DNA of 64,000 bases from Paragordius varius (Eukaryota; Animalia; Nematomorpha): the NCBI GenBank assembly GCA_964247055.1, contig OZ176055.1, forward strand, positions 2,046,001-2,110,000. Direction: 5' to 3'. Below the pieces are notes generated by a model. That model saw only the letters and a list, made by a program, of their open reading frames with translations. It ran no database searches and was not told the origin of the DNA. Position numbers and translations under genes: made by a program. Below are positions 39,401-57,199 of this stretch, piece by piece; position 1 is the first letter of the stretch, and each line of letters opens with the position of its first letter.

Positions 39401-41374
39401 TATTATTAACCTCCAACTGTTTTGGTATAATATTTACATAAATATACATACACAGTTTTTTAATTACAAGATTAATATAAATAAACCTAAAGACATTACA
39501 AACAAAGCTGTCGTAAAAATAAATATTATAATTTGCACACATATGAACCTACTTTTATGCTGTATTTGTAAATATTTTAAAAAATTATGTTAAACACCCT
39601 GATGTAAATTATTAACTGATCACTTGAATCAGAATTCAATTTTTTATATGATAGTTAAGCTTGAATAAATTATTGAAAACATCAGCCTTGATGAGTTAGA
39701 ACCACCAATTTTACGCTTCTTTTTATCGTTTACCTTAGGTATGATGTCAGGAAAATACTTTCGAACCATCTCAAACGATTCCCCTGATATGGCCAAAATG
39801 TATGGAATGTTGTTAGTATTTTCCATATCATCAAAAAAATAATCAGTTGTGAAATGCTGTGATTAAAAATATAATTATTAAGGGTTTGCAAAAAAATATT
39901 TGTAATAATAATTTGGTATAATTTAATATTAAAAGTCAGCAATTATTATCGAAACTAAAATATTGATTTTCAGTAATCATTGTTATATGCTAAATTTTTT
40001 GAAACTAAATCTTATTTTTTGATTAATATTATCGTTCTCAAAGTTTTAAAGCTGCTTAAAAAATCATAAGCGCGACTTTTGTCTTCACTATAAAATAAAA
40101 TCATAATTTTTATAACTAAAATCCATGATTTACATTTTACATTAAAATTTATGTTAATTGTTATTTGCCATTAATAAAACCCTCCTGCATCAGACTACAA
40201 AAAGCCAATATTTATTACAGTTTTCTTACATCTAGAGTCAGGTATCTCGATCCAATTTGAATCAATATATTGCTGTAATTTGAAAGCTTAATTCTAAGTA
40301 TTTATATTTTTCAGCAAATTTTAGAGTTAGCACTTGATCTATTTTCATTTTTTTGTACGCGAAGACGTGGGGCATTTTTCTAGCACACAATTCAAAATGG
40401 TAAATTTAATAATTTTTAGAAAGTTGTTTTGGAAATTTAAAGGCTTATATTTTACAATTTTCTAACATCTGCCAATAGCTTCCGAATACGACTCTAACCG
40501 GGATAGAAATAAATATCAAATTTTTGCAAATCAATGAAACCTGAAAACCTTTTAAATTTCAATATTTACAATTTTTAACCATAATATTATTGCCTTGTTG
40601 CATTTATTAAAAAATCTATGAAAAAAGGAGGCGAAAAGTTTGAGATCAGAGTATTTTCACCGCCTCAATTTTCATGAAATTTTTTGTATCCTGCACCAAA
40701 AAGACTAAATTATGAAATTTTGATTAAGGCTAAAAATGACATATATTAATTGGGATAATAAATTACCCACATAAAATGTTAAAAAATTTCATATCAAAAA
40801 AGGGGAAAATTTTGATTTGAGGATATTACAAATTTACATTTTATAAGATTTTTGGTTAAAGAACGTATATTTTGAAACAACCTCAAAACCATGAATCAAA
40901 TTAAAAGGGAATGGAGGTTAGTTAAATATGTGTGTCTTAAACGTTTTAAATCGCATCCAGCTATATAATTAGTTTTACCATTCTAACCTAAAAAAGTGTA
41001 TTTTAAAATACAGGAAAAATCAATAAAGTTTATTATATTAATATATCTAAATTATCCAGTATAAATTTTATATTATTATGTGTTTCTCTCTATATTAGTG
41101 AAAATAAATTAGATTATTTTATTTATGCACAACTATCAATTTGTTTGTAAAGTTTTTTATTTACCTAGTGTACTATTAAAACCAACTCACGCTTCTTACC
41201 GTGTGCTCAAAGATATCATTTTTTGCATCTTGTTCTGTGTTATTCAGGTAAATATATCTTATTTCTTGTGCTTTTCCAGGTCCACCCTCAGCAATTATAT
41301 TTATTATTTTTTCAGATTTTTTAATTAGGCCACATTGTTTTGCGATTGACAAAGTTGTATGCATACCATCCCCT

Positions 41375-53408: not shown

Positions 53409-56348
53409 ATGGATTTAAAATTTAAATTTACGCCTAAACTTAGGTAGCGAAACGAAAATTGTATCCTTTTTTATCTTTGTTATTATATATATATATTGTT
53501 AAAGTGAGTTTAACCTTAACTAAAATTTGTGCAGTCATAGAAAATATAGAAAATTTATCAAGAAGCTAAAGCGTAAACTTAAGCGTAAACAAGATGCGTT
53601 AGCAAAGATAAAAGTTAACAATAGACCAATAGCTCCGAGGATAAACATAAAACAATATTATGATAAATCCAAAGTATACGATTGCCTTTCACTCATACCA
53701 ACCATTCAAAATCTTTGTTCCTCTCAAAAAATAAAGTATTAACATTTAATTATTCAGGGGTTCGATCTTAAAATACAAGGATCCAAAAGTTGTCAGCCAA
53801 TTAAAATCGATAAATTATGTGCCAAAGGCGACTCCCATAAAACGGCCTACGCAGAATCCTGAACCCCCAGTCATTTATCATTTCGATATCAATCGTAATA
53901 TAAATGAAGACAAACCTCCTTGTTTATTCTTTCAAAAACTTGGCACTTGCAAATTTGGGATGAAGTTCGTTATTTTACCTAAAATTTATTTTCAAACTAT
54001 TTTATTAAACCCCTAATTACCTAACATAGCAAATAACGAATTATATCCTGGGTTTTTATATAACTAACCAAAAAATTATAAATGGCCGATTTTTTGTCTT
54101 AAATGCCGTGCATCATCCTTTACTGACAAATATTCCAAAACTTGACACATTGTCAGCTTTTTTAAATAGATATGCATAAAAAACTGACTAATTTAGGGGA
54201 AAAGCATTTTCAGAGCCGCAGTTTTACCATTGATATAAATTAAATTTGATTATATTTGAGAATTATAAAATTAACTGTGCTAAATAACATCTATGTTTCG
54301 CAACTCAAAACGATAGGCTTATATACCATTTTAAATTCAAATTCACCCTTGAACTTTTCAAATTTACCCTTAAACAATTCTAATTTACTCTAAAAATAAA
54401 TTATGTGATTTTGGCTAATATGAAATATATCTTTATGGCTTAATTTTTAATTTTTTCAGTATAATTTATTTTTAACCAAAATCTCAGTTTTTTAAATAGA
54501 AAAAAATATTGGTAATTTTTAACCTTAATTTATTTTTAGGGTGAATTTGAATCGTTCGAGGGTTAATTTGAGTTGTTCAAGGGTGAATTTGAATTTTTTT
54601 AGGGTAAATTTAAAGTGTATTTAATATATTTAAAAGTAGGTAATCAAGATTTAAGAACATGTAACTTTAATAAAAAAATATTTTTCCTTTATTTAGATGT
54701 ACCAAACGGCATACAGAAGCTACCAAAAGTGACATTGTTCTTTTTTCTAATTTATACAATGAACCTTGTGATTTAAACAGTATTCAATTTGATGGAACCA
54801 AACCTACCTTACATTATCAAGTATTCCACCAATAATCAATTATAATATGAATTAAAACTAATATTATTGTTCTTATTTGGTTTAAAAATTCTTATATTTT
54901 TTATGTATAATATACCATTTACAATTCAAATTCACCCTTAAACACTTCAAATTCACCCTCGAACAATTCAAAATTACCCTAAAAATGGATTATGTGTTTT
55001 TGAGCTAATATAATCATCATTTATATGAAATATATTTTTACGACATAGTTTTTTATTTATATTTTAAAAATATTAAAAAATAAAGGTAATTTTTAATCGT
55101 AGAAAAACACATAATTTTTTTAGGGTGAATTTAAATTTTCAAGGGTGAATTTTAAATGTAAATGGTATAATAATATTAATAGGAATTTTATTATGATGTT
55201 GTGAGTGAATTAAAGAAATTCGGACGCATTCGACGATTTGTAACCTGCAAAAATGTCGATCTTCACCTCAACGGAAATGTTTATGTCCAATTCGAAAAGT
55301 TATTATTATATCGAAAATATTTTTTTATAAATTGATCAATCAAAATAATCTTTTATAATAAAATTTAATGTATTGTTAGATAAATTTTAATAAAGGTAAC
55401 GATTATATTTATAAGTATTCATAATACAACAAATTATTTAACTTGAGATTATTAAATATAACTAGCAATTTTATTATTCATTTTTTGGAATAGTATTAAA
55501 ATCTTTTAATTTTATTTTACTCTGTAAAAAAGCTTTGTTTTCTAACCTTTTTTAGGGATGAAAATGCTTACGAAGTTTATGATACCTTTAATCTGAAACG
55601 TTGGTATGCCGGTAAACTCATACATTGTAAACTCATCTCAATCCTTTCATGGCCTTCTGCTATATGTGGTAGGCATTAAAAATTAATTTAAAGGACAAAG
55701 TCAATATGAGATGAGTAAATTTTGGTTTTGATTTTTAAAATTAGGAAACCAGAAATAATTACGAAAAAGAGTGAGTTTAAATGTCTAATGGTTAGAATAT
55801 GTATTAAACAAATTTAAATTTCATCTTTTTTAGAAGTTTAATAATGGTTTAAATTATTCTTTAAATGTGTTTTTTTATGAAAATATTGTGATGACTACAG
55901 TATTAATTTATTTTTAACATTATCTTCTTTATTTGTATTTTTTTTAAATTTTGACATAGTAAATTTGTTGAGTATTAGTGGTCGTATACATTTTAATCTG
56001 TACTTAATAAACTGTTTCCAGATCGATTTTTAAATTGATTTTAGTTTTTTTCTTTAATCCTTAGGGTTGTATATGAAAGGAGCTTGTGATAAAGGACGTC
56101 TATGCAATTATATTCACCCCTATCCTGAAATAATCCATGAACAACACAAAAATGAATCACCTCAACATCTTAAACGACCTACTAAACATAAAAGACATCG
56201 GCATTCGAAATCTCCAAATTATGATTTAATACCTAAAAGTCAGAAAAAACGTAATCTGTCACCAAAAGATGGCTCACATGATCCACATTTATTTAAACGG
56301 AGAAGGGATATTGATAGATATGTCCGAACGAAAAAATCAAAAAAATAA
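53409..56348 (+). CDS. ZRSR2: ZRSR2/Urp (U2AF35-related CCCH-UHM-CCCH minor-spliceosome factor)
   Basis: Exons 53409-53443, 53535-53673 (or to 53735), 53780 (or 53758)-53964, 54697-54820, 55183-55298, 55556-55668 and 56065-56348. Protein: MDLKFKFTPKLS|HRKYRKFIKKLKRK..QNPEPP..CLFFQKLGTCKFGMK|CTKRH..EFYYDVVSELKKFG..HLNGNVYVQF..RWYAGK..AICG|LYMKGACDKGRLCNYIH. The SHRKYR and QNPEPP blocks are ZRSR2-type and not found in U2AF1, as I recall. Confidence 0.88.
53461..53534 (+). other. U12-type (minor spliceosome) GT-AG intron signals
   Basis: 5' site GTATCCTTTT at 53461; branch CCTTAAC at 53514-53520; CAG 3' site at 53532-53534, 14 nt after the branch motif. Confidence 0.85.
54324..54619. mobile_element. 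MITE family A copy
   Basis: ta|taccattttaaattcaaattcacccttg ... agggtgaatttgaatcgttcgaggg... Confidence 0.72.
54913..55167. mobile_element. MITE family A copy (cleanest ends)
   Basis: ta|taccatttacaattcaaattcaccct ... agggtgaattttaaatgtaaatggta|ta; ends 15 nt before a ZRSR2 acceptor. Confidence 0.8.
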
Positions 56349-57199
56349 AATATATTTATAATAAATTTGAACACACGTAAAAATGAATCTCAGCATCAAG
56401 AACTATCTAATTCTAAATAAATATAAATGATATTAGCGCTCAACTAGTGTTCACCTTCGAAATTATGATTTAATACCTAATGACAGTAAGAAAAGACATC
56501 AAATGTCAAAAAACCGCTCGCCTGACCCACATTTATTTAAAAGGAGTCGAAATGGGACGCGAAAAAATTAAGGAAATAAATTGTTTAGTTTTAATTCATT
56601 GTATGATCGGTATATAATTCAGCAATACGATTTCATTTACTACTACGATTGCAATAAAAATTAATATTCATATTAAATACTAGGTTCCACATGTGCTTCT
56701 CATTATAGTATACCATTTGTTTGAACTGTGCCTCTTTGAATTAGGGCGGTGGCGAAAATTAAATTTTGAAAAAGTGCCTAATTATCAATCAAGACAGAAT
56801 TATAACACTCTAGGATTTGCCACTTAAATTGTATAATTTATTCATTTTTAAAAATCACACCCACTGTTGTAAGCCTTACGGTTCTAGATTCAACGTATAA
56901 ATAAGGAAAAAAATGGCATATGAATATACAATTAACATGATTTCATGATAAGCGAACAATCGTGTTTGCTTGGTAGAAGTCATTTTAACATTAAAATGTG
57001 TTTTCCACCTCACCAATCACATTTGTTAATTATTCCCAAAATTTTATTGGCGCTTTCTTTGGTCGGTTGAGAAAAGTTAAGAAATTATGCTATATATATA
57101 TATATATATATCAATGATAAGCCAGCATAAATGTACACACTGTAATAAGTTATTAAGCTGTGTTAGTTCAATTCTTCATCCCATATTTTTGACAATTAA

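Follow-up and report, generated by a model that had tools for sequence, protein, structure and literature searches.

A candidate autoregulatory poison switch in intron 1 of a ZRSR2-like gene of Paragordius varius, with one U12-type and two U2-type donors sharing a single acceptor

Intron 1 of a ZRSR2-like gene is described here from a 64,000 nt stretch of the genome of the nematomorph Paragordius varius (contig OZ176055.1, positions 2,046,001 to 2,110,000, forward strand). The whole stretch is referred to as the window, and positions are counted from its first nucleotide. In this intron three 5′ splice sites converge on a single branch site and a single acceptor, the CAG ending at 53534. The outer donor (53444) is of the U2 type and gives the full reading frame; a U12-type donor (53461) lies 17 nt downstream, and its use leaves a stop codon close to the start of the mRNA. 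The nested U2/U12 intron may act as an autoregulatory poison switch of ZRSR2, a reading to which we give a probability of roughly 0.45. The features on which it rests are as follows.

53409–53443, + strand: coding part of exon 1 in the favoured model, with the ATG, MDLKFKFTPKL and AG, the first two bases of a Ser codon.
53444–53534, + strand: outer U2-type intron, 91 nt, GTAGCG...tgcag, phase 2, donor AG/GTAGCG at 53443/53444; from sequence and frame.
53445–53447, + strand: in-frame TAG, retained in the mRNA with either inner donor; from the reading frame.
53461–53470, + strand: U12-type 5′ splice site GTATCCTTTT, preceded by TT, which opens the inner 74-nt intron 53461–53534; the only such site in the gene and the same in both haplotypes.
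53504–53509, + strand: third donor GTGAGT (AAA/GTGAGT at 53503/53504), consensus U2 type, which opens a 31-nt micro-intron to the same acceptor; unproductive.
53514–53520, + strand: branch motif CCTTAAC, common to all three candidate introns, branch A 15–16 nt from the 3′ end; U12 consensus including the CC.
53533–53534, + strand: shared 3′ splice site AG (tgcag/T), without a polypyrimidine tract upstream; from direct reading.
53535–53735, + strand: exon 2, coding (S)HRKYRKFIKKLKRKLKRKQDALAKIK...; from the reading frame.
53736–53757, + strand: 22-nt micro-intron GTATTAACATTTAATTATTCAG, required for the frame, with an AAC branch-like motif right after the donor.
53758–56348, + strand: remaining gene, with zinc finger 1, UHM, zinc finger 2, basic tail and stop; exons read in frame.

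The gene consists of seven exons on the + strand (53409–53443, 53535–53735, 53758–53964, 54697–54820, 55183–55298, 55556–55668 and 56065–56348). Joined through ATG 53409 and the outer U2-type donor, they give an uninterrupted frame of 359 aa, in which the junction 53443^53535 forms AG/T = Ser. Enumeration of all upstream ATG and donor combinations showed the outer intron to be the sole route from ATG 53409 to the full ZRSR2 frame. When the U12 donor is used from the same ATG the frame ends after 12 codons, and the next in-frame ATG falls within zinc finger 1 (MKCTKRH). The third donor adds 60 nt in frame, but this segment begins with the TAG and the product is unproductive as well. An original prediction made from the sequence alone had described the ATG, the AG/GTAGCG donor, the TAG, the U12-type 5′ site, the CCTTAAC and the acceptor, and had called the outer junction productive and the U12 junction unproductive. 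Reading and recomputation bear out all of these elements and the loss of the frame with the U12 donor. The outer junction is productive only when the 22-nt micro-intron 53736–53757 is removed too, which that account did not mention; the GTGAGT donor at 53504 was also absent from it. GTAGCG had further been called a weak donor. This is a relative matter, as the other donors of the gene (GTATTA, GTTCGT, GTATTC, GTTATT and GTAGGC) are none of them nearer consensus. A 22-nt intron, introns of about 260–730 nt and a U12-type intron are thus combined in one gene.

The U12-type signals of the inner intron are well formed, in agreement with the original prediction. The 5′ site at 53461–53469 matches the U12 consensus GTATCCTTT at nine of nine positions and shows TT, not AG, at −2/−1. 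The branch sequence ACCTTAAC at 53513–53520 matches the U12 consensus TCCTTAAC at seven of eight positions with the CC present, and is followed by taaaatttgtgcag. There are 14 nt between the end of CCTTAAC (53520) and the intron end (53534); the spacing falls in the 10–20 nt range of U12 branch sites and, as in U12 introns, a polypyrimidine tract is missing. Lack of AG at −2/−1 and the presence of CC in the branch motif favour the minor over the major spliceosome (PMC11347168).

Chance expectations were calculated from window frequencies. The occurrence of GTATCCTT inside a given 91-nt intron has p ~2e-3 and a CCTTAAC ending 10–16 nt from the 3′ end has p ~2e-4, with a joint value for 5′ site and branch motif of ~5e-7 per intron. 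The 22-nt micro-introns of the window carry GTATAAC or GTATTAAC, with an AAC close to their 5′ end that is similar to the TTAAC core of the branch motif. Given these motifs, TTAAC at about 15 nt before the 3′ end may serve locally as the U2 branch motif; conceding this raises the joint value to ~4e-5. Even then the value would be low for seven introns in a gene that is among the few where a U12 intron is of particular significance. The pairing of a U12 5′ site with the branch motif has no second instance in the 64 kb, and the gene has one of each. For the third donor, GTRAGT is expected 0.025 times per 91 nt. Because the joint chance value is small, the motif pair is unique, and TT at −2/−1 and the CC are present, the 74-nt GT-AG intron at 53461–53534 appears to be a genuine intron of U12 type, nested in the U2 intron.

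Other arrangements of U12-type elements were also considered. A sequence ATATCCTT at 51677 could on paper pair with the same branch site; it was set aside as a chance match, since it would join an AT start to an AG end across 1.8 kb that includes high-copy repeats. A search of 52900–57000 for tandem U12 5′ sites gave one exact RTATCCTT and two sites with one mismatch (54043 and 54427), both more than 500 nt away. An element of the U11 snRNP-binding splicing enhancer (USSE) type was rejected, as there is a single U12 5′ site only. No significant RNA structure was predicted around the donors (z = +0.9), and an Rfam search of the window gave no small nuclear RNA or other RNA family.

The proposed mechanism is as follows. 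Removal of the outer U2-type intron 53444–53534 would give the productive mRNA from ATG 53409. U1 at 53444 and U11 at 53461 would lie too close together for joint binding, and both pathways would need the same branch site and AG. U1 and U2 acting on the outer donor would yield ZRSR2, while U11/U12 with ZRSR2 at the 3′ site would yield a dead mRNA; the GTGAGT micro-intron would be a second dead end, reached through the major spliceosome. Either inner donor would leave the TAG at 53445–53447 in frame, 12 codons from the start and with six further introns downstream. Such a transcript would make no ZRSR2 and would be an expected substrate of nonsense-mediated decay (NMD); even if it escaped decay it would encode 12 residues only. 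U12-type 3′ splice sites are recognised by ZRSR2 (Shen et al. 2010, as cited in PMC8329584). Because of this role, and because the U1 and U11 sites are 17 nt apart, a rise in ZRSR2 or in U11/U12 activity would divert pre-mRNA to the dead isoform, which amounts to negative feedback. The sequence itself shows the anatomy, the reading frames, signals beyond chance and the gene family; use of both sites, dependence of the outcome on minor-spliceosome activity and subsequent NMD are what we infer from it.

The gene is supported as a member of the U2AF35/ZRSR2 family. The product displays, in order, a basic N-terminal extension (SHRKYRKFIKKLKRKLKRKQ..., then QNPEPPV), a CCCH finger of the form C-x8-C-x5-C-x3-H, a UHM, a second CCCH finger and a basic tail. 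In a PDB search the exon 5 peptide matched the UHM of S. pombe U2AF23 (4YH8, E-value = 1.9e-6) and of human U2AF35 (1JMT, E-value = 5.7e-4) over 36 residues, and RWYAG is read in exon 6. The two fingers that flank the UHM, CLFFQKLGTCKFGMKCTKRH (C-x8-C-x5-C-x3-H) and CGLYMKGACDKGRLCNYIH, were identified by direct reading. Pfam zf-CCCH scores on the exon pieces are weak (E-values of 0.0015 and 0.06) because both fingers are split by introns. For the same reason PDB and Pfam searches with exons 2, 3, 4, 6 and 7 gave nothing specific. The PDB matches to the exon peptides did not include a ZRSR2 chain. A search of protein representatives with the exon 3 peptide, a query poorly suited to the purpose, returned multi-CCCH proteins only and no ZRSR2; the exon 5 peptide gave generic RRM-like leads only in a protein atlas, and exact database look-ups of six open reading frames of the window were blank.

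The overall architecture appears to be that of ZRSR2/Urp. A long N-terminal extension with basic SHKKYR... and QNPEPPV motifs separates ZRSR2 from U2AF35. In the present gene the extension before zinc finger 1 is about 135 residues long and carries SHRKYRK and QNPEPPV. The N-terminus of the outer-intron product, FTPKLSHRKYRK (FTPKLSHRKYR), appears to resemble FPEKPSHKKYR of human ZRSR2. The original prediction had named the gene ZRSR2. The family assignment holds on the UHM match, the CCCH fingers and the extension, while the separation from U2AF35 depends on the long N-terminus and on likeness to these human motifs. The C-terminal tail is basic (KHKRHRHSKSP...KRRRD...KKSKK) with hardly any RS dipeptides, and so does not form the RS domain by which ZRSR2/Urp is recognised. 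The C-terminal RS domain is variable among invertebrate ZRSR2 orthologues.

Sequencing reads provide a comparison of two haplotypes. In two runs, X1 and X2, read depth is even across exons, introns and flanks and two haplotypes are seen; both are therefore DNA. The two haplotypes of the sequenced individual are quite divergent over 53457–53884, with about 17 substitutions plus indels in 430 nt. Inside intron 1 the second haplotype has an extra T after 53475 and differs in length elsewhere too. As the haplotypes differ by indels there, the segment 53448–53503 is non-coding. The third donor reads GTAAGT in the second haplotype, with the consensus kept. A model with the 31-nt micro-intron as the sole intron and coding through 53448–53503 was rejected; the TAG is in frame, there is no later ATG, and the segment carries the haplotype indel.

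In exon 2, the first three haplotype differences (53535, 53544 and 53598) are synonymous in the ZRSR2 frame, whereas five of the next are nonsynonymous and give five amino acid changes in about 20 codons (53626–53680). The basic head SHRKYRK...AKIK displays synonymous changes only. From this pattern the basic head appears constrained and the rest of the N-terminus loose. The 53535 T>C change is synonymous with any of the three donors and does not discriminate between them.

The closest known system is Urp (CG3294) of Drosophila. In intron 3 of that gene the U12 5′ site is preceded, at a distance of 29 nt, by a U2 5′ site (Lin et al. 2010, PMC2831892). Through these 29 nt the U12 isoform acquires a premature stop, with 314 aa in place of 456, and its transcript shows a 1.4- to 1.8-fold stabilisation in NMD mutants (PMC2831892). 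The U12 sites are found in Diptera only, the U2 isoform is the productive and ancestral form, and the U12 site was inferred to have originated within a pre-existing U2 intron (PMC2831892). According to Turunen et al. 2013 (PMC3584512), this twintron is the sole novel U12 intron to have been observed. The original prediction had pointed to an insect Urp precedent. The precedent is real and closer than was thought, and the logic of a shared acceptor with poisoning on U12 use, which that prediction had put forward as its own, is a variant of this published work.

The likeness is extensive. Both genes belong to the ZRSR2/Urp family, both have a U2 5′ site a few nucleotides upstream of the U12 site (29 nt in flies, 17 nt here), and in both the sequence that U12 splicing adds to the exon contains a premature stop and the full protein comes from the U2 isoform (here, as judged from the frame). 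In both, the U12 site would have arisen inside an older U2 intron; by analogy with the inference for Diptera, this may be how a new U12 site is most easily born. The differences are also clear. In flies the intron is the third of four, whereas here it is intron 1, before zinc finger 1, in another phylum. Since the intron is different and the dipteran U12 pair is absent outside Diptera, the arrangement in P. varius would be of independent origin and not the same intron by descent. The 3′ sites are 30 nt apart in flies, whereas the branch motif and 3′ site are shared here; a third, U2-type micro-intron donor is present here; and the stop is 12 codons from the AUG with no truncated protein, in contrast to the 314 aa product of flies. 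The fly case has support from expressed sequence tags and NMD mutants, while the present one is predicted from genomic sequence. Thus the poison-on-U12 logic is already published for dipteran Urp, and the present locus would be an independent second case, with a shared 3′ site. Autoregulation of ZRSR2 through intron 1 is plausible.

More distant likenesses are found in three other systems. In the USSE feedback of U11-48K (SNRNP48) and U11/U12-65K (RNPC3), the pre-mRNA of a minor-spliceosome component is likewise diverted unproductively at high activity (PMC5473595). There, however, tandem U12 5′ sites enhance an upstream U2 3′ site and are not spliced, whereas here a single site has its own branch site and forms a complete intron. 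A review places dZRSR2/Urp in the class of nested introns where a U12 intron lies inside a U2 intron, and adds that the two may have one splice site in common (PMC8329584). NCBP2, PRMT1, CTNNBL1, CUL4A and SPAG16, treated in the same review, share this topology, but their nested introns give alternative proteins or have no known role, whereas here the choice of the U12 intron would abolish a U12 splicing factor. SR and hnRNP genes regulated by alternative splicing coupled to NMD are alike in that a splicing factor is kept in check when its own transcript is spliced so as to include a stop. They differ in the use of poison cassette exons or 3′ untranslated region introns and of the major spliceosome; here two spliceosomes would meet at one acceptor.

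The region upstream of the start codon bears on how the mRNA begins. ATG 53409 has G at −3 and G at +4, and an in-frame TAG lies 12 nt upstream (53397–53399). A 26-nt tandem duplication (53309–53334 and 53335–53360; GGTGGTGAAAAAACCATATTATACTC and GGTAATGAAAAAACCATATTATGCTC, 88% identical) is found about 50–100 nt upstream of the start codon and may be a doubled promoter element. High-copy repeats upstream of the gene (52108–52461 and 52816–52992, summed depth 2e4–8e4) bound the unique promoter region to roughly 52993–53408; the first of them starts with a G+C-rich stretch that is like a tRNA or a short interspersed nuclear element. Frame enumeration gave one further first exon:

53339–53395, + strand: alternative first exon on paper, from ATG 53339 to donor AAT/GTAGCAGG (53395/53396).

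ATG 53339 is created by the second copy of the duplication; the first copy has GTG at that place.

Several results weigh against the poison switch and have to be set beside the evidence for it. A path leads from ATG 53339 through a 48-nt intron (53396–53443) to ttag/G, a 17-nt exon (53444–53460, VAKRKF) and the U12 intron to an open 372-aa product. A four-codon upstream open reading frame at 53404–53418 (ATG ATA TGG ATT TAA), in good context with A at −3, overlaps ATG 53409, which is awkward for this ATG as the main start unless the 5′ untranslated region is very short. The RNA-labelled runs of the same species, X3 and X4, contained nothing of the gene, and no RNA evidence was obtained for any junction. 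None of the four listed intron differences between haplotypes falls in the U12 motifs, but these make up about one fifth of the intron and the result is not significant (p ~0.37). Searches for homologous proteins with the exon 2 and exon 7 peptides gave zero candidates, and thus no orthologue on which conservation or N-terminal homology could be judged. A stop 12 codons from the AUG might also escape NMD by reinitiation, in which case ZRSR2 would still not be made.

The rival readings differ in what they make of these points. The path from ATG 53339 would suit an ordinary, constitutive and productive U12-type intron, with ATG 53409 intronic and no switch. The outcome would be the same if an upstream exon not seen here, or a leader added by trans-splicing, were joined at the ttag/G acceptor. 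Besides the open 372-aa frame and the short upstream frame that speaks against ATG 53409, this explanation can point to the acceptor cctaaacttag/G, which is similar to other acceptors of the gene, and to the general expectation that a perfect U12 intron is constitutive. It requires, however, that a U2 and a U12 intron flank an exon of 17 nt. Its start codon lies in the second duplication copy, where the first copy has GTG, and looks like promoter or untranslated sequence and not like conserved coding sequence. Its N-terminus, ...VAKRKF-HRKYRK, loses the match F-x-x-K-x-S-H-K/R-K-Y-R to human ZRSR2. Human ZRSR2 is not known to be listed as a minor-intron gene, and an ancestral U12 intron would thus be unexpected here. 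The original prediction had named an upstream exon that makes the U12 product productive as the arrangement that would overturn it. An open frame of this kind exists on paper, but because of the ATG in a duplication copy, the 17-nt exon between two intron classes and the lost N-terminal resemblance it is ranked below the outer-intron model, and we regard it as rather unlikely.

An explanation that is unlikely too, if by a little less, accepts the U12 signals as real and denies them a regulatory role: the intron would be an evolutionary intermediate between intron types, or would see low, unregulated use as splicing noise. This is the standard alternative reading of nested introns (review, PMC8329584), and the single U12 5′ site in place of a tandem USSE-type element, the non-significant RNA structure and the non-significant conservation of the motifs between haplotypes all agree with it. 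On the other side, both are perfect motifs, and drift would be expected in a site undergoing decay; a third, consensus donor that retains the stop is itself improbable by chance (0.025); and Diptera carry the same kind of arrangement with the same consequence in the same gene, which argues for selection. That the whole is an ordinary 91-nt or 31-nt U2 intron with U12-like strings is very improbable. RTATCCTT taken alone, which is at chance level in the 64-kb window (6 observed against 7.0 expected), and the possible use of TTAAC as an ordinary branch motif of the micro-introns of this genome would fit such a view. The joint probability of ~4e-5 to 5e-7 per intron does not, nor does a properly spaced 5′ splice site that matches at nine of nine positions and lies in a gene of the very small group for which it would be functionally meaningful.

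Some features of the neighbouring sequence were observed as well. The G+C content of the window is 20–35%, a range that includes the 26.9% of the published Gordionus genome. Two copies of an element resembling a miniature inverted-repeat transposable element are found in introns 3 (54321–54614) and 4 (54910–55156) of the ZRSR2-like gene, with inverted ends ATTCAAATTCACCCTT ... AGGGTGAATTTGAA and internal 21-nt repeats. The summed word depth over the contig is 1e5–1e6 for this element, compared with a few hundred for unique sequence, and the family is therefore present in the genome in extremely high abundance. The tail-encoding part of the last exon (56148–56349) recurs directly behind the stop codon as a degenerate tandem copy at 56379–56580, offset by 231–244 nt and with blocks of 80–96% identity; this copy may represent an alternative 3′ end or what is left of a decayed duplication. 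On the + strand at 41562–43860 there is a gene with a La domain (Pfam La, E-value = 1.5e-15) and an RRM, apparently interrupted by micro-introns. Candidates for 22-nt micro-introns are found at 43031 (GTATAAC...), within this gene, and at 41147.

If the poison switch is real, it would be a third feedback loop beside those of U11-48K and U11/U12-65K, and the compact layout, with a 91-nt intron, one branch site and one acceptor, would suit a simple minigene on U1/U11 competition. Should the U12 intron instead prove constitutive, it would merely be one more U12 intron in a minor-spliceosome gene. A wider proposal, which we hold only tentatively, is that ZRSR2 has twice independently, in Diptera and in an AT-rich worm lineage, gained a U12-type intron inside its own U2 intron, such that minor splicing kills its own mRNA. 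The form described here would be the most compact yet seen, with three 5′ sites (productive U2, poison U12 and poison U2 micro-intron) competing for one branch point and acceptor. U12 introns are considered hardly ever to arise de novo, and this would be the second documented case. Independent recurrence in the same gene, in a different phylum and a different intron, would point to selection, and not accident, as the force that couples ZRSR2 expression to minor-spliceosome output. ZRSR2 dosage would then be a convergently evolved homeostat of the minor spliceosome.

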